Part shown: in pieces, positions 1-14,200 of the stretch | How positions within the stretch are numbered: the first letter of the stretch is position 1 | Layout of the letters: each line of letters begins with the position of its first letter | Assembly: GCA_024704765.1 (NCBI GenBank) | Contig: JAKMXF010000088.1 | Span: 372,001-436,000 of the forward strand | DNA from: Oopsacas minuta | Taxonomy: Eukaryota > Animalia > Porifera | Length of the DNA stretch: 64,000 nucleotides | Direction: 5' to 3' | Made by a program: the position numbers and the translations under genes | Notes under the pieces: model-generated | Databases searched by the model: none | Told to the model about the DNA's origin: nothing | Seen by the model: only the letters and a program-made list of their open reading frames with translations

Positions 1-1366
1 TGTAATATTATACCTGGATATTTATACTGTAACAAAGATAGACACCTGGTTATTATTACTATCATCAGTCTACATACATAATATACCAGTAATCACATAC
101 ATCATACACTGCAGGTTGATTGTTTGATATTATTATTATTATTATTATTAAGCATTGTCAAAGGAAGTAAAGTATTTTGGACTCATATGTGATTATTGTA
201 AATTGATTACATAACGTTATAGGCGGTTTTTAAATTACCTACTTTTTTCCAGAGGAACTATCAAATGACCTGACGTCATTTGATGATTAGCCCAAAGTAA
301 ACTTGTTTCTCATCGATGATTTCGGGGAAAGTTGGGCGTTGAACGGCCTTGATTTTTCGTTATTTATTAATTGTAGGGATATTGAGTAAGCACTACTTAT
401 AAGAATATACTGTCAACTTCCGTGATAATTACTCCGATATAAGCGGGTATTTCAATAGATCCGTGTTTGATATAACAGGAGTTGACTGTAGTAGTCCACC
501 TGATAGATATTGTAATTTACATTATATTATCTCGCATTTTATCCAATTATTTGATTGTTTGTAAACGCGTATCTGCAATTATTCAGTTATAACGATAATA
601 GTACATGAAATATTTGTTTGGGGATATATGATCGGGGGCTGGCGGGGACGATAAACAAGTCAGTACACATGATCATATGAATATTGCTTATTAATAGTAT
701 TGAATCATTGATATAGCAAATTTGGAAACGCGCAAACAATTGTGCGCATTATTATCTCAATAATTTCTAAATATAGTTTGAATTAAATATGCTAAATTGT
801 ATTAAATAATATTTATAGAATTTTTTACAACGCCTTTCTCATAGATTGTCCTTCAACTCTGATTGATTATATCATCCACGCTCGTGAGGGCCCAATTCAT
901 CCGCCAGCGTAGAACGTACATGATTTGCTTCCCCTTGTGACTGTACTGGCCACTAACATATAATTACTCGGGGTTGAATTGATATACTAGATAATAACTA
1001 GCCACCCTCTCTATAAAAGAGAGTAAGGATACAAGAATACCAAAATTTTTGGGTTTTCATATCACCAAAATTTTAGAATTAGTTGAACTAGCTCGGATAA
1101 GACGTACTCCTTCGGGAAACAAAAATTAGTATCTGCACGTCTTATCCGAATATGGACTGTATTGAAATGAGCGGGAGCTTAGATTTTTGGATGTAAGAAT
1201 TTCAGTATGTAATGTCAGCCTTGTCGTTATAATCAGAGAGCTTCGCAAGTGTCCTAATTATCCACAAGTATTCAATAATAATCTTCGAATATAACTTGTA
1301 TACAAACAGATTGAAACACTGAAACAATGCACTACTTATTCGATAGTTAATAACCTGGATCATCTT

Positions 1367-1390
1367 ATTTCTTATTAACCCAATCAATTG
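1367..1390 (+). promoter_or_regulatory. PSE-like snRNA promoter motif, copy 1
   Basis: atttcttattaacccaatcaattg is conserved with 2115-2138 and 2715-2738. In copies 2 and 3 the motif ends 38 nt before the ATACT start; copy 1's start was placed using that spacing. PSE identity is inference from position. Confidence 0.45.
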
Positions 1391-1427
1391 TATAGGAAAG
1401 TCTATTGAAAGTAAATTTGTTATAGAA

Positions 1428-1566
1428 AGGCATTAATCCGTCTCTTGATCATTTGACTAGTTATACTGGTCCGGAGAGAGACGGTTATCTTACCTGGCTT
1501 AGCAGTCCGTGTTCATGAACGGCTCGCTAGCATAATTTTTGATTGGAAGTTCTTTAATGAACTTCC
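1428..1566 (+). ncRNA. snRNA-like RNA copy 1: U5-like 5' domain followed by U1-like 5' arm, hairpin, Sm site and 3' stem-loop
   Basis: Stem ccgtctct/agagacgg encloses gactag-ttata-ctggtc and the U5-type TCCG..GAGAG motif. It is followed by CTTACCTGGC (1489-1498, matches the U1 5' end), a hairpin at 1497-1531, GCATAATTTTTG (U1-type Sm context, 1530-1541) and the terminal hairpin ggaagttc/gaacttcc (1545-1566). The start is inferred from PSE spacing in copies 2 and 3. Confidence 0.6.
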
Positions 1567-2114
1567 ACTTTACTATAAAATATTAAAATAGAAATTACTC
1601 GAATTATTAGATTGCCAATTCAGTTTACCCCGCTAATCCAAGATCCCACAGCCTAGTACCAATTAAAGTAAAGTTTATAGAGTAACCTCCCGTTATAATC
1701 GAAGCTCAGCGGACTGCGATAATTTCTTTGATTAACCGAGGGAATACATGTTACTTTTATTGTTTTGGGTTTCGGCACTATATTTGATCCCTCAATAAGA
1801 TAAAGATATACAAGAATAATTATACTGTAAATGTTGGTTTATAAATAGCTCTCCACTACTACTTCCCAACAGATGATTAAGCGCTCCTCTTTTTTTAAGA
1901 CATAACCTTGGGGTGCGTCTTATCCGAAGGGTTGTATTCAATAAACGGGAGCTGAAAATTTGGATGTAAAAAAATCAGTATGTAATTTCAAACTTGTTAT
2001 AGCCAGCTTCACAAGCGAAAGTGGACTAATATTCAATAAAAAATCACCAAATTTGACTTAAATACAAACAGATTGAAACAATGAATAATACACTGTAATT
2101 GATAGCTTCATCCC

Positions 2115-2138
2115 ATTTCTTATGAACCCAATTAATTG
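2115..2138 (+). promoter_or_regulatory. PSE-like snRNA promoter motif, copy 2
   Basis: atttcttatgaacccaattaattg, ending 38 nt upstream of ATACT at 2176. Confidence 0.45.
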
Positions 2139-2175
2139 AGTAGAAATGTATAATTAACTAAGATGTTTGTGTAAG

Positions 2176-2317
2176 ATACTTTACAGGCTCTCAATAGAGA
2201 GTCGGTCATTGTGAAAAAGTAATACCGTCTCTCAATATTTGACCAGTTAGTTATACAGGTCCGTAGAGAGACGGTTATCAACCAAGAGATTTACAGGAAG
2301 TTCTTTATTGAACTTCC
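2176..2317 (+). ncRNA. snRNA-like RNA copy 2: U5-like, with duplicated 5' domain and degenerate Sm site (possible pseudogene)
   Basis: Starts ATACTTT. A collapsed stem (acaggctctc-aata-gagagtcggt ... aaagt) precedes a full domain accgtctctc / gacc-agttagttataca-ggtc / cgta-gagagacggt. It has the same terminal hairpin ggaagttc/gaacttcc but only AGATTTACAG at the Sm position. Confidence 0.5.
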
Positions 2318-2714
2318 ATTTATTATAAAAAATATGAAACATAAAAACTTAAAATATTATAGATTGCTTTATCCTGTTTGGCATCTTCCTCCTCCTTTAC
2401 TTATAGGTCGATTAATTAGAAATAGCTATCCACTCCTACTTCCCAACAGAGCATTAAGCACTCTCTCCACACTCCTGGCCTAAAAAAGGAGCTGCGCTCC
2501 CAGTGAAACTCGGATAAGAAACCATTCGGAGGTACCTAATATTCGAGTAAGGATTGTATAATTTGTATTCAATAAATGGGAGCTTACATTTTGGATTTAA
2601 GAATTTCAATATGTAATTTCAGGTTTGTCGTTATAGTCAAAGAGCTCGCAAGTGCACTAATTATCCTCTGTAACAATACACCACCATACCACACGTAATT
2701 GATAGCTTCATCCC

Positions 2715-2738
2715 ATTTCTTATGAACCCAATTAATTG
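2715..2738 (+). promoter_or_regulatory. PSE-like snRNA promoter motif, copy 3
   Basis: Identical to the copy 2 motif, ending 38 nt upstream of ATACT at 2776. Confidence 0.45.
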
Positions 2739-2775
2739 AGTAGAAAAGTATATTTAACTAAGATGTTTGTGTAAG

Positions 2776-2883
2776 ATACTTTACCGTCTCTCAATATTTG
2801 ACTAGTTATACACAGGTCCGTAGAGAGACGGTTATATCTGAAAGTTAGTTTTTGCACCCTAGGAAGTTCTTAATTGAACTTCC
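2776..2883 (+). ncRNA. U5-like snRNA variant copy 3 with non-canonical loop 1
   Basis: 5' ATACT as in metazoan U5; stem Ia acttt/aaagt; 3'-side internal loop tatatctg; perfect 10-bp stem accgtctctc/gagagacggt; TCCGTAGAGAG resembles U5 UCCGUGGAGAG; stem gact/ggtc closes the loop agttatacaca; Sm-like AGTTTTTG; 3' stem-loop ggaagttc/gaacttcc. About 108 nt. Confidence 0.65.
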
Positions 2884-3383
2884 ATTTATTATAAAAATAT
2901 GAAAACAGAAAAAACAAATATTTTAGATTGCTATTAAGTAGACTCTCTAATCCGAACGGATCCCGGTAAATTGAATACAAATCGTTCGGATTAGTGAATA
3001 ACATTGAAAAGTACAAATTACAAATTTTGTAAAATTCAGTATAATGTTGTCAATATCTTTAACATATATAGTAATAACTATAGTTCAATTCGCGGTATTA
3101 TTCTCTACAATTGTTTTGTAAAATTTACGTGTACATCATTTTTCTAAGGGTTGTACGTCTAACCTTATGCCCTGGTCGTATCAGCGAGGGTCAACCTGCA
3201 CTGATTGTCTCCAGTAGCTGAATATAGCCCTATTTTACCAAGTGTTAGACGTTCTACAAAGGTGGAGTTCAATTCTCTACAATTGAGTCTTTTGAATATT
3301 TAGAATGTACTGATTAACGAGGGTCTACTGTGTAGTTTCATGAGTAAATCTCCTATTTTCCTAAGAGTTAGACAATTGATAAA

Positions 3384-3787: not shown

Positions 3788-6700
3788 TCATGCGTAATGT
3801 TTTTGAATAACACTCGCGCTTTTTGACACAGGATATCCCGCTTTATCCTGTGCTGGCATCTTCCTTCTCCTTTCCTTACTGCTCGATTTGGATACTCCAG
3901 TTTTCTCCTTTCCCTTCTCCCCAATCGTCCTCTTATACCCAGGGGTGTAAGACAGATATACCCCACTTATATCGGCGCCGTATACTTCATCATAATCAAT
4001 ATCTGGAGTAGTATCCTCACGCGCAACGTTATTACCAGCATACGCTAAATTCCGTATATGCCATTCACCTATAGATTCGTCCCAAATAGAATTATCTTCA
4101 ATCAAATGCATGGCTTGTTCTGGGACATAAAATGAGAGGATTAAATTTGTAAGGCTCAACTCGCGGTTTAATAGACCGACATTGTCTGTTAGCTCGCTCA
4201 CTTCTAGATGGTTTTCTGCCTTTAAATCGGCTAATTCTTGTTTCGCTGTAACAATCATTTTCCATAACTTTTTTAGTTTTTTAGTTTTACCATCAGCCTC
4301 TTCTTGAAGTGAAGCGTATTTCTCTTCAATATCCAACTTTTCTGCTTCAGTTTTTTCCAACTTTTTCGCGAGTTTTGCCTCTCTCTCTTTTCTTCTTTTA
4401 AGCTCTTTTGCTGATTCTTCTAATAATCGTTCTTGTTTCTCGGCTTTATCCAATAAATTTACTCCACCAACGATAACTTTTCCCTGCAAATCAGCAAGTC
4501 TTTCCTCCAAATCTTTCTGCTCCTGTTTAGCTCTCCCTAACTCTCTTTCCTTCAATTGTAACTCTTCTCTTGCAACTTGTTTCTCTTCTTCTGCCATATC
4601 TTTCTTCATTAAAAATGAATTCTTTTCACTTTCTAACTCTTTTTCAAGAGTTAGAATTGTATCACTAACTTTTCGTTTCAATCTCTTTTTCCTTTTCGGA
4701 ATATCTGGACTTTCCTGCACCTCAATTTCAGAGCTACTCCCTTCTTCAAGTTTCTTCTTTAACTTAGCTATTTCAAGTTGAAATTCCCTCAAAAGTGCGT
4801 CTTTTGGATCTTCGTTAATACGCACAATATTTTGTATCTGTTTCGCTCTATTAGCATATCTCAGTGTATTAACAGACTCTTCTATATTAAAACTAGCTGG
4901 CCCTATATTTGCTAACATAACTGTTTTAGAATTACCACCTAATGAATCTTGCAGTAGTCTGGTTAGATTCGAGTTGCGGTAAGGTATGTGTGTACTTTTA
5001 CCGTCTACAAGAGCTGATATTACATTCCCGAGGGTTGTTAGGGAGAGATTGATATTCGTAGCTTCTTTAAACTGATCTCCAGTGACACCTATAATATTAC
5101 TCTGTTTTATATTCAGCAAATATTGAAACCTGTCTCCAATAAATGAACATGTAATCAAAGACAAACAATAACAACAGACAGTGGCTTTCTATTGTACAAC
5201 AGAAAATAACTAGCACTATCCGAGTGTCGGTCTTATCAAAATATGGATTGTATTAAATGAATCGTATGTATTGATCGGGTGACGAGTGCACTTCTTATCC
5301 GAGTTCTACTGTATGGATATATCCAAAGTTATACAACTTAATACACAAATTTTCGAACTACAAAAAGTACAAATTCAGGCCTCTCCAGAATCTCGCGATT
5401 TCATATTTCACGTTTGAGAGAACCTTGCATGATGTATCTACTATCATATTTCAAGGGAGTTTTAGCATTTGTAATTTATTTCTAGCATTCTGCGATTCCG
5501 AGAGGACAGCTTATTTATACCGCGGAAGGCAGGTAAGCAAAGCTTGCTTGTAGTTATAACAAAAGCATGTATTAAAAATAATGACGTCACTAACCTGCTT
5601 TCTTTACTCTCTCTGAACCAGCTAGATCTACTAAGTGTAGTTTCCCCATTCTCACGTGTAGTTCGTTATCAGCTCCCAGGTCACTACGCTCTACTGTTAT
5701 TGTGAATATTGCGTGAGAACGAGATGACCTATAGTAGAAAACTATTCATAATTCTTCGCAATTATTAAATGAATTTGATGCAGTAGAAAACTGTTATAAG
5801 GACATCTTGAAATATGTTCTGATGATATGATAATACCAAAATATTCGAGAGTATTTTCAATTGGTATAATAATATCCTTACTGTATTAGGTGTCAAAATG
5901 TGAAAATATGCACATAAGAACAATTTCAAATGTCAGGTGCACATCTAGAGGTCACTACGAATACACATACCAAATTTGGTGTCTTATTATCTAAAGGTGT
6001 GAACAGGAGAGTGAACATGTCATAGTATAGTTGGTAGAGTAAAAATACCAGAAATATGCCATATTCCCCTGATTTAGTAATTATTTCCCTAGCCCTGGAT
6101 GGTTGGCAAGTATGAAGTTGTGATTTCACCAAAAAATTCTGACCACAAGTTTGAATTAGGAGTCCCAATCTCGAGATCTCTTGCTAATATATTAATGCAA
6201 AGAGTACAAGCTGAACGAGTATTTTCATCAGCTGCTTACCTCTGCAACATGTTTGATCGTCCGTTGGTGTTCGTATAAACAAGATTCCACTGTGTTTATT
6301 CCGCAAGCGTATTAGTAGGTTGATAGAACTTGTTATAGCAGATTTCATTGCCTTTCATAAAATTTACAAACTTATCCATAGTCCTAATATAATAGTATTT
6401 ATGTAAGAAATAAAGTAGCTTATCATTGAGATATCCATTGCAAAAAGAATTAAGAAATCGTGTCAAAAACCTTCGGATTTGTATCCAACTAATGAATTAA
6501 TTATTCGTTGAACAGGTGATAAAATAAACAGACCATTCGATCATCTTATCGAATGCTAGTAGCCCAGTTGTCGTTGTAAAAATATACGAACGAATTATCA
6601 GAAAAGATACAACAGACAAACATGAATACTCTACTAACCTCAAATTCATGTTTGTTTTAGCAAAAGCTCTATTACGATTGCCTGTGGTCATAATCTTATC

Positions 6701-7303
6701 CATATCGTCTACTGATTTAACAACACATGATAGAAGGTCTTGCACATAAACTCCAATATCTGGTCGCTCATGTATTTTTGGAATTTTATCGCCAGGGTCT
6801 TTGACGAGCAAATCACGAACCTGTTCATTATAGATCTCAAGATATGACACACGTACGAGAAACTGGTTTTCTCCTTCCGATTTTGCTATATGACCAAAAA
6901 TATGTGCGAATGAATTCGGGATAATTCCTTGCAATTCCGAATCATTTCTATCCCCCTCCATCGTGTATGTTTTCCCAGTACCGGTCTGTCCGTATGCAAA
7001 TATTGTACCATTATATCCCTCGAGAACTGAGTTTACTATTGGTCTTGCTGTATCATTGTAAATATCTAACTGTTTTGAAGTTGGTCCGAATACTGTGTCA
7101 AAGGTAAAACTTCGATTCGAGGATCGACTTTTTAAATGTTTTCCTGATATAAATATTTGTCCGTTTACTTCATCTACTTCTATAACTGATGCATAGCCGG
7201 CATTTTCTTCAATATCTGAGAGTGGTCGAGAACGAATGGATACTCTAACTTTATCAACTTCACCTTTGGTATTTTCTTCTATTTTTGATTCTACAGAACT
7301 CAT
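3788..7303 (-). CDS. KIF3A: Kinesin-2 motor subunit KIF3A (3 exons, 699 aa)
   Basis: Exons 7303-6639, 5728-5595, 5088-3788, all GT-AG and in phase. P-loop [16 protein letters not shown] and DLAGSE are present; stalk and tail ([54 protein letters not shown]) match KIF3A. Confidence 0.95.
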
Positions 7304-9002
7304 CTATGATGCCAAAATCAAACAAAAATCCAGTTTAAACAGGATATTTAAAGATATTCTTTACACGGATAATTTGCCGAATTGAATTATATTCAATGCC
7401 GATTATATCTACATGAGCAGCTTCGCTGGCTCGCGCTTGCGCGGCTTGCAAACACAGAGTGTTTGCATGTAATTCGACACTTCGTGCTTCGATGTTGCAT
7501 AAGAACTATTATTTACACATGAAAATCGGAATCAGAGTACTCGATTACCATGGTATACCCGTTGAAACAAAGTTTCTGCGAAATTTGTTTACTTTATCAT
7601 ATTCAGAAAACAACAAATGAGAAACTTGAAAATGCAGAATCAGCGTTACTATGTTACCTCGTTGTAGCCGTTGTGTTAAGTGCATGTCCCTACTTATATT
7701 TATAAAATAATTGCAATAATTATGAGAAACTTTAGGATATTAGTCATGTTTAATAATTCAATCTACAAATCATTTAATAATGGAGAAATTGTTATGATGT
7801 CCGCAATACAAATATTAGAAACACCTATAGCATTCTATTATTAAACTTACTTAGTGAATAATTATTGCTTTCATTTTCTAGGAAACTGATTTGGCAAAAG
7901 GCATAGATTTATATTTACAAAAAATAGGTGTAAACATGTGTTTTGTAATTGCACACTTCAGTGATTGATTGTATACTGTTGTGCTTTTAATGCAAGATCA
8001 GCGAGCGAGTTGTATTGCCGAATAAGAGTTCAATTAATTAACCAACAGTACAATTTATCTCCTGGATATTTATGAAAGTAAACTAGAACTGAAAGCTAAT
8101 AATTATTAAAATAAGTAAGTAACTTATAAGCATTACAAAAGAAAGGTTTATGAAAGTGTAGCTTTCCTCTTTCCAAACCTTAATTTGTACAGTAGACAAT
8201 CGGTAACTAAGAAAATGACAGATATACACTTTTTGAGTTTCTTCTGCATTTTCAATGAGAATAAATTCATTAATAGGAATTCCAGATAAAGACTAAAAAT
8301 TTCGGTTCCTTAGTGTTCGCATTAACGAGATTCTACTGTATGTATGATCGGGAAACAGCTCTGTGAACGGAGTTTTAAACTATTTTAAAACCTGGGCGAG
8401 GCCTGGATCCCTCCTATTCTAAAAGCTTTTGAAGTTTCTGACCATATACAATATCTATCATAATATACACCCAGCTGTTCATAACTCATAAGGTCATCAA
8501 ATAAGGAATTGTAAACATGTCGGAATTATCCAAATATTGACTATGGCATCTACATCTACCAGAGCAACACCAAGTATTATATGGTATTTTATTACTAATT
8601 ATGCGCAAAGTAATTTCCAATAATATGGCCAATTTCCGCCTACCAATTTGAATTTACCAACTATCACAATTAGGTTTCTAACTTAGAAATTAATATAAAT
8701 GTTTCAACAAGGAAGTCAGATAATTGAACATCCGTTCTTCACCTGGAAAGTTATGAAATCATTAAAGTTAGAAAAGTGATTCATTGAAAAGGATAATATT
8801 AATTATGTTGATTAGGTTTCCAGATAAATTTGATTATTACTCAGTTACAGACAGTAAATCTAATTAGCTGATTGTGTAATTAGATTTTGGAGGAAGGTGG
8901 AAAAGTAATTATGTCCAATGCTTTTGAATTTTCATCAACCATGATAGTGCCTCTCTCTCTCTACAGTATTACAAATTAGGAAATTGTCTGTAAATTAGAA
9001 TA

Positions 9003-11265: not shown

Positions 11266-14200
11266 TCATAGATCAGTTTGTATTGCTGAAGTTCGCTGTA
11301 CGAAATTCCGTAACTGAGATGTACTAGCCCTTGATTCAGGAGTATGTCTATCTAGATCGAGATTACTGTAGCGGATTGGATCATCATCAAAGACTGAATC
11401 ATCTTCACTTTGGCCGCGTTTAAAGAAGTTAGGGCCTAATTTAGCCCTCGTGTATTCTGGGGGTGGAGTCCAATCTGGGCCGGCAGTACCTCTCCCGATA
11501 GTTGTTAATAACTCAGTATTGAGTGAGGATTTTCTTCTCATATTCGGTTTAGGTTGTTGATTCGTAGTCTCTTCAGGATGGAAAATATCTTGAGACATGA
11601 ACTTTTTAAACCGCAATGAATAGAAAGCAGGATTGTGTACAGAGACTGTATCTCCTTTAGTGATTACACTCTTCATTGCATGTTCTATCTTCTTTTTAGC
11701 TCTATATTTCTGGAGTATATCTATAATACCAACGTATACAACAGCTATGTCTCCGTTGGGTAACGTAGCAACCACTCCGTCCTCTGGAATTCTATCGAGA
11801 TATGATGTCAAGTTTTGATTGTCTAGCGGTGTTTCTGTAGGCGTATCAGGTTCACAGATAATCGAATCTGAGTGAATTGGATGATTGGAATTCCTAGAAA
11901 AGTATGAAATAATAAAATAATCAGTTCTAGCAATTTTCAGGGTAGAATTCGACTTGTCCATTTGATTATTAAACAACACACATTTGATTTCAAACTAAAC
12001 TCATGAAAATTAATGTATTTGTGTGATTAATTAGTAGCAATTGGTATTTTGATTTGTTACAAATAATATTATCCTGTTCCCGTTTACGTATGCAAATTAG
12101 TATACATTCTGTAAGGCATATGCAAATGAGTAAGACTAAATACGTCTCAGAAATTATTAATCCATTTCTGATAAACAGCTACAAAAATGATTTTATATCC
12201 ACATGTGAACATAGCGTAATATATTATTTGGGTTTCAATGAGGAATTTGACCACAGGAAAAGCAGTTTATCTACATTTTAGCCTACATATGTAACGAGGA
12301 CATGTTTTTTATGACAAGACAACGTTCATAGAGTGAATAGTAGCAATGACGCTTAAGGCAGGTAAGGCGATCAAGCAAGGTTTTTGTAAGTTTTCAAAAA
12401 GATGAAAGATAATGACACTTTTGACAAGTTATAAATAGAAATCAAAGTCATGGCTGTCCCACAAGGATTAGTTGTTAGTATTACCGTTTCATCTCCTAAT
12501 TAATTGCATTTCATAATAGTTACAATAATAATTTGGTAGAAACCATATAACCAGTAATTGATGAGAAATGATTCCAGACCAAATTAAAGCTAATTAGGAG
12601 AAAGTACGTCGTAGTTGGTCGCCTGTTTGTAATTTAACAATTAAATTTGGTTGGCGTGTAAAAACAGAATTAATTATTGTCCATAGGTTGGTCAAAAGTT
12701 ATATAGAGTTGGAATTCAGAGATTCTTGTCTTAAAACTTTCGGCCAAAGAAACTAAGATCTCTAACTAGCAACAAAACCCTTCCTACTTTAATTAAAATA
12801 GATAAAATCGCTTTTCCAACTAAATTAGACTTTTCGAAATTTCAGTGAAAACATGAAGTGTACTATCAATTGCATAACTTTTCTCAGATTAGCAGACAGC
12901 AATATTGTAATGATATAAAGTTATGCCAGGCCCGTTATCATTGTAAGCATAAACAAGGTATTAAATAACATATATCTCCTGATGGTGTGTTGTAACATGA
13001 TTGGAGAATATATAGTAATTCTGTATTACGTTAATTATAGAATATGATTGCTCCTAAACATCACCAAATTATTGTTAGAAGACTTGACATTCTTTTTGCT
13101 GATTATTAATGACAATTAGAATTTAATTTTCCACCAAAAATTGCTCTGATGATATCCCAGAGTTAAATTGCAATTGAATCGTTCGTGAATAATGTCGGAG
13201 TCCGCTGACATCAAATTGGAGTACCCTGCGGATTTTGTTTTCAGAAGGGGTACATCTTATCCGATTTCTACTCTATTTATAAATAACATTATCACAAACC
13301 AACTTACATAGTATTAGTATCAATGACGTGTGACTCCATTGGCAGATCAAATCTGCTTCTATTCACTCTGAATTCTTCACTAACATTATGTACAGCTAAC
13401 AACAGACTGTAGTCCATTATATCGAAACTCTCAAGCACCATACAATCTCTATGTAGCGTGTTAATTAGCTTACTATACATTTCTGGGGTAGTTGAAAGGC
13501 CCTGGGGGAACATTTGGATGAAGTCAAGGTCCTTGAAAGTTGGTGAAGTTTTACGTTTCTCTTTCATAGAAGCACGTCGTCCATATGTAGACCCTTTGAG
13601 ATCGAACTTGTAATGGTATTTGATGGTAGATGGTAAGAGATTGTTCATAACTACGAACCGGATTTTACGACTGCCACTTTGGTAAGCGTAGAGACCTAAG
13701 AATTTAGGTAGAAGTGTTTGTGTGTTCTATAAAAACAGATAATTATAAAATTTGACTAACAATTCTTTTGCAAAAAATAAGAACAATAATAGTAAGGAAA
13801 TTTTCATATTTTAGTTTTATCGCGAAAAATTCAACTTACATATTCTAATGAAATTGAGAATTTGTTAATTCAGTCAACTCCAGTCATATCGAAGCAATAC
13901 TTTAATACAAGTGGAGTTCGATATAACTGATGAAAGAGATGTTTCTTTGACGGTTAGGGACCATATTTGTACAATTTAAGGCTTCGATATAACAGGAATT
14001 GACTGTATTTATAAAAGGAGTATTTATATCAACTTACTTGTACAAGATTCATCCAATATCCTGCTAACAACTTCTGCAGGAAGAAAGCTTCGTTAAAAGA
14101 TACAGTCTTGATAATATACTTATCGTCTTGTGTAAGATAGAACACACTTCCACTTGCCCCTGGGTTACCGAGCTGTTTCAGAGGTGTATAGCAAACGCTA

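Follow-up and report, generated by a model that had tools for sequence, protein, structure and literature searches.

A candidate small nuclear RNA gene of glass sponges that combines a U1-like core with a Y RNA-like stem

U1 and the Y RNAs form two of the best-studied small ribonucleoprotein particles (RNPs), and we know of no natural RNA that joins them; to our knowledge, the combination has not been described before. Short U1 RNAs that lack stem-loops II and III occur in trypanosomatids. Here, we analyse a 64,000-nucleotide (nt) stretch from the glass sponge Oopsacas minuta (GenBank assembly GCA_024704765.1, contig JAKMXF010000088.1, positions 372,001 to 436,000 of the forward strand; hereafter the window), in which three related units form a 1.6-kb array about 900 bp past the 3' end of the KIF3A gene. 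The first unit, copy 1, had been read in a preliminary description as a chimera of the U5 and U1 small nuclear RNAs (snRNAs). Our analysis points to a different composition, in which copy 1 is probably a single-copy snRNA-type gene found across glass sponges, with a permuted stem homologous to that of Y RNAs and stem-bulge RNAs (sbRNAs) joined to a minimal U1.

The sbRNAs are the nematode homologues of Y RNAs (PMC4726728). The sequence GGUCCGA is the contact of the protein Ro60 in Y RNAs (features described in PMC4201824, PMC4030889 and PMC4726728), and the site as a whole is a helix of seven base pairs in which one C bulges out of one strand and a further bulge lies on the other (PMC4726728), the bulged cytosine being the primary Ro60 determinant (PMC4030889). 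Above the Ro60 helix lies an upper stem with A/GUG-CAC/U, which is followed by the UUAUC motif (PMC4726728). The bacterial YrlA RNAs are the nearest precedent in logic for the arrangement proposed here, as they join a Ro60-binding stem to a module that imitates another RNA class (PMC4201824), tRNA in the bacterial case and apparently U1 in the sponge. The two second modules are unrelated in sequence, however, and the YrlA stem is made by the two ends of the RNA; moreover, Ro60 binding has been shown for the bacterial RNA (PMC4201824), whereas for the sponge RNA it is predicted. Our literature search found no description of Y RNAs in sponges or of hexactinellid snRNAs.

The U1-like core of copy 1

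All of the motifs named in the preliminary description were found in place, namely CTTACCTGGC at 1489-1498, a GCTTAGC/GCTAGC helix around a hairpin, GCATAATTTTTG at 1530-1541 and a terminal hairpin (Table 1). Taken by itself, CTTACCTGG is unremarkable, with one match in the window against 0.24 expected. At the gathering threshold, Rfam gave no family in the window or in seven related loci, and a permissive search of 2.2 kb around the array (900-3100) returned neither U1 (RF00003) nor U5 but only IS128 and small nucleolar RNA noise. Since CTTACCTGG stands at chance level and no Rfam family reached threshold, a comparison across species was needed to decide.

For comparison, we took the loci that surround KIF3A and its neighbour MIC10 from six further glass-sponge assemblies (labelled L001/L007 with a second contig L008, L002, L003, L004, L005 and L006). 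The KIF3A relatives at these loci are 69-78% identical and lie on large eukaryotic contigs in European Nucleotide Archive (ENA) assemblies. Each of the six contains an architecture like that of copy 1 on the strand opposite KIF3A, so that one U1-type gene per assembly is present in all seven, with two additional rearranged copies in L006. The U1-type unit lies within a few kilobases of KIF3A in five assemblies and 9 kb away in L004; the L006 stretch stops short of KIF3A.

A 14-nt block, UUAUCUUACCUGGC, is invariant in the seven-species alignment while the surrounding stems vary, and the core of the Sm-like site, UAAUUUUU, is equally invariant together with its preceding GC. Such invariance, over a divergence at which KIF3A is only 69-78% identical, is as expected of an essential snRNA. 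The AUCUUACCUGG region is identical to the Rfam U1 consensus CUUACCUGG, and the 5' splice-site-complementary sequence that defines U1-type RNAs, ACUUACCUG, is present, invariant and predicted to be unpaired in the seven species, with probabilities of being unpaired between 0.83 and 0.96 for CUUACCUG. The concern raised earlier, that the CCU of this segment might be masked by pairing with an AGG at 1428-1430, loses its force, as the AGG lies upstream of the likely start near 1436 and is not conserved. Conservation across species thus settles that the U1-like core exceeds chance.

The consensus fold of the seven species comprises a long 5' hairpin, about 12 unpaired nucleotides, a helix with one stem-loop, an unpaired U-rich site and a 3' hairpin. 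Compensatory two-sided changes maintain 14 of its 38 predicted pairs; in the 3' hairpin, for example, GGAAG/CUUCC is replaced by GGGAG/CUCCC in three species. The minimal U1-like module of the preliminary description, in which a stretch complementary to 5' splice sites precedes helix H and its single stem-loop, with an Sm-like site and a terminal hairpin after them, is therefore borne out by the conservation and covariation in relatives that had been proposed as a check. In the U1-type genes of L001, L002 and L004, the UAUC of the UUAUC motif can also pair with a GAUA just 3' of the Sm site, and in predicted folds this long-range 4-bp helix closes the U1 core; it is found in these three species and is absent in the other four.

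Searched alone against 4227 Rfam families, the core of the window copy matched RF00003 best (16.6 bits, expectation value (E) 0.01 in a search space of about 90 nt), and RF00003 was likewise the top family for the L004 core (15.4 bits, E 0.024). The alignment spans CUUACCUGG, helix H, CAUAAUUU.UG.UAG and the terminal stem-loop, which corresponds to stem-loop IV, so that helix H, the Sm site and the 3' terminal stem-loop stand in U1 order in the model alignments of both species. With a gathering score of 69.5 for RF00003, these scores support likeness to U1 but not membership of the family. The local U1-model search suggested earlier was thus borne out for the isolated core, below threshold, and not for the 2.2 kb around the array.

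The comparison with RF00003 brings out both likeness and difference. As in U1, CUUACCUGG is followed by a GGC that opens helix H, one stem-loop lies inside helix H, and an Sm region (GCAUAAUUU.UG(A/G)UAG) precedes a terminal hairpin; the gene is likewise flanked by an snRNA-kind promoter box and an element like the 3' box. Unlike in U1, the splice-site-binding sequence of copy 1 stands inside the RNA, preceded by some 50 nt that form a structured domain, and the score is 15-17 bits against 69.5. Copy 1 also lacks stem-loops II and III. Where U1 RNAs have stem-loops I-III with the U1-70K and U1A loops, a single internal stem-loop was found, whose loop varies among species: it reads GCUCAAGU, ACUCAACA or CUUGU in other species, with at most UCA in common. 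The match to the U1 stem-loop I loop at eight of ten positions that had been noted is accordingly confined to O. minuta. The two KIF3A introns start with G|GTTAGT, with which the conserved segment could pair at -1 to +2 and +4 to +5.

The Y RNA-like 5' module and the transcription unit

The domain upstream of the U1-like core resembles the Ro60-binding end of Y RNAs. Human Y4, Y5 and Y3 sequences were taken from PMC13376739 and the Y4 5' fragment from PMC5331234. Copy 1 shares 18 of 24 ungapped positions with nt 3-26 of human Y4 (CUGGUCCGAUGGUAGUGGGUUAUC), the range across 21 family members being 14-20 of 24, and the spacing from GGUCCG to GGUUAUC is 9 nt in family members, as in human Y4. The other arm of copy 1, AUUUGACUAG, agrees with AUUUGACUGG at the Y4 3' end at 9 of 12 positions. 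For a composite match of the Y4 type, 0.047 occurrences are expected in the window; there are three, one in each unit.

In an alignment of 20 members, the invariant or nearly invariant letters are those of UGA, of the UUAUC block and of GUCCG, for which one L004 member has GUACG. The UUAUC follows the 9-bp stem in 16 of the 20, the other four having UGAUC, UUACC, UGACC and UUAUA, and is adjoined by AUG/CAU in most species and by ACG/CGU in O. minuta. With the Y-type pairing, 91% of alignment cells are paired, compared with 41-47% for slid partners, and five pairs show compensatory changes. The features of the Ro60 site are all present, with a GGUCCG(A) strand that carries the bulged C, a conserved UUGACU strand paired to it and a bulge on the opposite strand. 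The G-U pairs of the hairpin are valid only on the + strand, which argues for an RNA structure rather than a DNA site. By eye, the internal loop did not fit a K-turn.

The arms stand in the reverse order to those of a Y RNA: the 3' arm of the Y RNA comes first, then a short loop placed where a Y RNA has its two ends, then the 5' arm, which runs into UUAUC. The module therefore appears to be a circularly permuted, closed Y stem, and the permutation would explain why covariance models miss it. A search with 63 nt gave a weak, truncated match to the nematode sbRNA family RF01656 (E 6.7), whose consensus reads UCGGUCCGGaG....UGGGUUAUC. In common with Y RNAs and sbRNAs (for example RF01656), copy 1 has the GGUCCG strand with a bulged C paired to UUGACU, the opposite-strand bulge, an upper stem of about 9 bp with UUAUC directly after it and then a variable region; its gene likewise belongs to a cluster and is preceded by a box of the proximal sequence element (PSE) kind. 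It differs in its permuted topology, as the Ro60 helix is closed by a loop and the RNA ends elsewhere. A stem made by the RNA's own 5' and 3' ends, as in Y RNAs, was not found, there being no partner strand downstream. The sponge family also has no consistent 3' U-tail, and its signals are like those of snRNA genes of RNA polymerase II (pol II). What corresponds to the variable loop is a 3' tail that ends in a conserved hairpin, and the Rfam models miss it.

The preliminary description had called this domain U5-like. A likeness of CAUUUGACUAGUUAU to the U5 loop 1 region is seen in O. minuta alone. Loop 1 of U5 is invariant in eukaryotes, whereas the ACUA that recalls it here is not conserved. 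No U5 match appeared at any threshold, even in the 63-nt search, and the letters that are conserved are those of Y RNAs; we regard a U5-U1 chimera as almost certainly wrong.

The two modules appear to share one transcription unit. In each of the seven U1-type genes, the distance from a box with an AACCCA core to the hairpin base is 53-56 nt (in L003, 54 nt from the variant AACCAA), which places both modules behind one promoter. The box recurs at 2117 and 2717 in the window; in paralogues it stands 54-73 nt before the stem, some of them with 18 or 41 extra nucleotides. Other species have similar A/T-rich boxes about 30-33 nt before the stem. Nearly every member of the family has a purine-rich element like that of copy 1 (AAAAGAGGA, AAATAGAGAAA, AAGAGAGAA) 8-20 nt past the 3' hairpin. 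Given this snRNA-gene layout, with a predicted start at the hairpin and an end after the 3' hairpin, and given the RNA-type pairing of the hairpin, we infer that copy 1 is read on the + strand as a single RNA of about 133 nt (about 1436-1568) containing both modules. Of the signals for RNA polymerase III (pol III) and La that accompany Y RNA genes, the upstream box and an A/T-rich element are seen, while T-runs are inconsistent and the hairpin is followed by the element like the 3' box. The idea of one RNA with two modules thus holds to the extent that a separate structured 5' module and an apparent common transcription unit are present, but the 5' module is not U5.

Table 1. Positions of predicted features of copy 1 and its two paralogues in the window
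Feature	Position	Strand	Remarks
PSE-kind snRNA promoter box TTCTTATTAACCCAATCAATTG	1369-1390	+	Core AACCCA 1377-1382; 55 nt upstream of hairpin base
A/T-rich, TATA-like stretch	1406-1428	+	About 10-30 nt upstream of predicted start; tentative, read from sequence
5' module, closed and circularly permuted Y RNA-like stem	1436-1489	+	Motif match, covariation
Upper stem, 9 bp	1438-1446 with 1476-1484	+	Part of 5' module
Opposite-strand bulge	1447-1451	+	Part of 5' module
Ro60-type helix, UUUGACUAG with CUGGUC-C-GG	1452-1460 with 1466-1474	+	Bulged C at 1472
Apical loop	1461-1465	+	Reads UUAUA in copy 1; loop reaches 35 nt in L004
UUAUC motif	1485-1489	+	Directly after upper stem
5' splice-site complement AUCUUACCUGG	1487-1497	+	Single-stranded; U1 5'-end sequence, here internal
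Helix H-like stem GCUUAGC/GCUAGC enclosing one stem-loop	1497-1531	+	In place of U1 stem-loop I; compensatory changes in helix H and inner stem
Sm-site-like AUAAUUUUUGA	1532-1542	+	With preceding GC matches U1 block GCAUAAUUUgUG; aligned to U1 Sm region by Rfam; predicted unpaired
Terminal 3' hairpin GGAAGUUC...GAACUUCC	1545-1566	+	Common to whole family; aligned to U1 stem-loop IV
Purine-rich element AAAATAGAAA	1585-1594	+	Candidate snRNA 3' box; putative role in 3'-end formation
Copy 2, type C paralogue	2186-2321	+	R1 model, 52.5 bits
Copy 2 mini-hairpin	2186-2203	+	Upper stem only, then GGUCAU and spacer
Copy 2 full Y-like stem	2223-2279	+	Followed by short tail UUAUCAACCAAGAGAUUUACA and 3' hairpin 2296-2317
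Copy 3, type B paralogue	2782-2887	+	R1 model, 48.5 bits
Copy 3 Y-like stem	2782-2836	+	Followed by tail with AUCUGAAAG and U-run, and 3' hairpin 2862-2883

The proposed particle and rival explanations

The motifs, their conservation and covariation, the synteny and the promoter spacing are established. From them, a U1-type RNP with a Y RNA handle can be proposed. Transcription would start about 55 nt 3' of the AACCCA box and end just past the 3' hairpin. Where a Y RNA has its variable loop, the RNA would run into a minimal U1, with AUCUUACCUGG, helix H and its one stem-loop, the Sm site and the terminal hairpin. An Sm ring would assemble on AAUUUUUG, the unpaired CUUACCUG would pair with 5' splice sites in the fashion of U1, and Ro60 or another protein of Y stems might bind the Y-like stem. 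The ends of the RNA, its polymerase, the binding of Sm proteins and of Ro60 and the role in splicing are all predictions from sequence.

Several points weigh against the joined U1 and Y-like RNA. In all U1 RNAs known so far, the 5' splice-site-binding sequence stands at the capped 5' end with no 50-nt hairpin ahead of it, whereas in copy 1 the box spacing in the DNA would put the start about 50 nt upstream of it. The U1-core scores of 15.4-16.6 bits are far under the RF00003 gathering score of 69.5, and E values of 0.01-0.024 are valid solely for a search space of about 90 nt that was picked post hoc. The loop of stem-loop I, which is the U1-70K site in known U1 RNAs, is not conserved. The hairpin of a paralogue gave no Y or sbRNA match in Rfam, the sole sbRNA match being that with an E of 6.7; since Y-type covariance models cannot align a permuted RNA, the likeness to Y RNAs rests on comparison of motifs and spacing with published sequences. 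Judged by sequence features, the copy 1 RNA combines a U1-like core and a Y-like stem, yet lacks defining features of both families, namely the 5'-terminal position, stem-loops II/III and score of U1, and the terminal stem topology and consistent U-tail of Y RNAs.

If the Y-like hairpin were a 5' leader that is removed, or if transcription started near 1487, the working RNA would be a stand-alone mini-U1 of about 82 nt, comparable to the short trypanosomatid U1 RNAs, and there would be no chimeric particle. That the splice-site-binding sequence of known U1 RNAs stands at the very 5' end, that the isolated core is aligned with RF00003 starting at model position 1-4 and that one L006 copy consists of the core without the hairpin would all agree with this. 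However, the promoter box keeps its 53-56 nt to the hairpin base in all species and is about 105 nt from the U1-like start, and the hairpin is conserved as much as the core, with RNA-type G-U pairs and covariation on the + strand. The hairpin-less L006 copy, moreover, is pseudogene-like: its loop is mutated, its 3' part is duplicated and the promoter box is missing. We know of no snRNA that loses its capped 5' end in this way, and we consider a mini-U1 unlikely. Copy 1 could also encode a Y-family RNA that acts outside the spliceosome, with an ordinary U1 encoded elsewhere and a U1-mimicking tail that serves as a decoy or steers Ro60 to RNAs with 5' splice sites; we grant this a small but real chance. 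Paralogues with the same scaffold bear unrelated tails, the U1-70K loop is not conserved, and Y RNAs are regarded as modular tethers (PMC4726728; bioRxiv 10.1101/312249). Against a mere tail stands the invariance of the 14-nt block and the Sm core while KIF3A is only 69-78% identical. The U1-type gene is, in addition, a single-copy gene that none of the seven assemblies lacks, in contrast to the other tails, which differ already between L001 and L008.

Two further alternatives would change the extent or the fate of the RNA. Y RNA genes are pol III genes (PMC4726728), and a type-3 promoter such as those of Y RNA and U6 genes could drive a transcript that ends at the TTTTT of 1536-1540, in which case the supposed Sm site would be a terminator and La site and the 3' hairpin would lie outside the RNA. 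The A/T-rich boxes about 30 nt upstream and the T5-T6 runs in all U1-type genes would fit, but the 3' hairpin covaries (three species have changed both partners of one pair) and is common to all members of the family; T-runs are absent before it in most members and are not consistent after it in any, and a purine-rich box stands at a fixed distance past it as in pol II snRNA genes, so that we hold a pol III transcript to be very unlikely. Spliced-leader RNAs are also short Sm-class RNAs, with a 5' hairpin holding GU and small gene arrays in trans-splicing hosts, and hexactinellids do trans-splice, with a leader of about 37 nt in Aphrocallistes (PMC10282587; PMC7986045). The 5' hairpin arm up to G|GUCCG (33-40 nt) might then be a leader exon for mRNAs, whose predicted length would fit; the GU of GUCCG is invariant, and an acceptor-like CATAG stands directly before the KIF3A ATG. 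In copy 1, unlike in such RNAs, the GU lies within a Ro60-type motif, and the match to the Y RNA Ro60 site fully accounts for GGUCCG and its partner strand. Spliced-leader RNAs have an Sm site in every functional copy and usually many copies, whereas most L005 and L006 paralogues lack an Sm site and the O. minuta genome holds only three single-copy units; a U1 that donated its own 5' end would, besides, destroy itself. Searching the literature for a published spliced leader with the hairpin sequence gave chance primer matches only, and we find the leader explanation highly improbable.

We therefore return to the single RNA with a permuted Y-like stem and a minimal U1. A bolder version of it, which we put forward as possible though doubtful, is that the gene is the only U1 of glass sponges, that each U1 particle carries a Ro60-binding Y stem and that the neighbouring paralogues are the only Y RNAs; the whole family would have originated by permutation of a Y RNA gene (for example, a tandem duplicate read from middle to middle) and subsequent capture of a U1 core. 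If this were true, RNA surveillance or replication-type functions of Y RNAs would be physically tied to recognition of the 5' splice site. A U1-type core behind a 50-nt hairpin would challenge the need for the splice-site-binding sequence at the capped end. No circularly permuted Y RNA is known to us so far; a loop-closed stem of the Ro60 type would be the first and would demonstrate that free ends are not needed for the Ro60 helix. Together with its relatives, it would also represent the first Y-like RNAs in sponges. The splicing machinery of glass sponges may repay study.

Paralogues, genomic neighbourhood and minor observations

The three units of the array have in common about 280 nt of upstream sequence, the 5' hairpin and the 3' hairpin, and differ in their middles, in agreement with the recurring scaffold with exchangeable parts that had been noticed earlier. 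A covariance model (R1) built from the seven U1-type genes gave 24 matches in the window and the compared loci. Copy 2 has no U1 core and no clear Sm site; copy 3 has no U1 core and matched no Rfam family. Members without the U1 core comprise these two copies and others in L001/L008, L002, L005 and L006, and most of those in L005 and L006 also have no U-run. Some tails are common to distant species, such as the motif AUCUGAAAG shared by copy 3 and L005:2669-2804, and others differ even between L001 and L008. Copies 2 and 3 had been taken for units that simply lack the insert of copy 1, but, since their types occur in other species as well, they are old paralogues in their own right. As they carry the same Y-like stem and 3' hairpin with other tails, the array can be read as the Y-like RNA cluster of the sponge with one U1-type member. 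In this, it resembles the clustered Y RNA and sbRNA genes of other animals, with one universal member that carries a U1 core.

The mini-hairpin of copy 2 (with its following letters at 2186-2209) has a counterpart on the minus strand of L002 at 12265-12300; in both, the Ro60-type helix is deleted and GGUCAU or GGUCAG and a spacer follow, as in a partial duplication of the Y-like stem kept in two species. In L006, two rearranged U1-type copies lie at 1062-1219 and 5252-5352 (minus strand). In one, a palindromic copy of the stem-loop region stands where the upper stem should have its 3' arm. The other, with a mutated loop, has neither promoter box nor Y-like hairpin, and its part with the Sm site and 3' hairpin is duplicated. 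Both are probably pseudogenes. L001 and L008 are two long contigs of assembly ERZ25072730. Their genes stand in identical order, and those of the U1 type and of type B are almost the same in both, whereas the type C tail measures 57 nt on one contig and 19 nt on the other; tails other than the U1 type evolve fast. The contigs are haplotypes or, alternatively, stem from two close species within a single sample.

The minus-strand open reading frame at 3788-5164 is KIF3A, being 100% identical to an Oopsacas minuta protein. On the same strand, a pyrimidine-rich stretch at 7304-7328 that ends in CATAG abuts the KIF3A ATG (start codon at 7303) and looks like an unpaired 3' splice acceptor, of the kind that marks spliced-leader trans-splicing. 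The O. minuta units have no match elsewhere in the genome contigs at a likeness of at least 80%. A MIC10 protein search for transcriptome contigs returned genome assemblies only, and a scan of Joint Genome Institute (JGI) metagenome contigs for the U1-like block with an Sm site gave three chance matches without the architecture. In four public runs from one sample, the array region is evenly covered by genomic contigs; in run X4, the contig at window position 2313 begins with a Nextera adapter, CTGTCTCTTATACACATCT, which is a library artefact and not part of the genome. Two short interspersed repeats lie at 1092-1132 and 1698-1732, the former within an inverted repeat formed around GATAAGACG...CGTCTTATCCGAA. 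A large number of other contigs from the genome match these repeats over 30-40 nt only, the summed word depth rising from about 128 to 840-920, and both may be miniature transposable elements.

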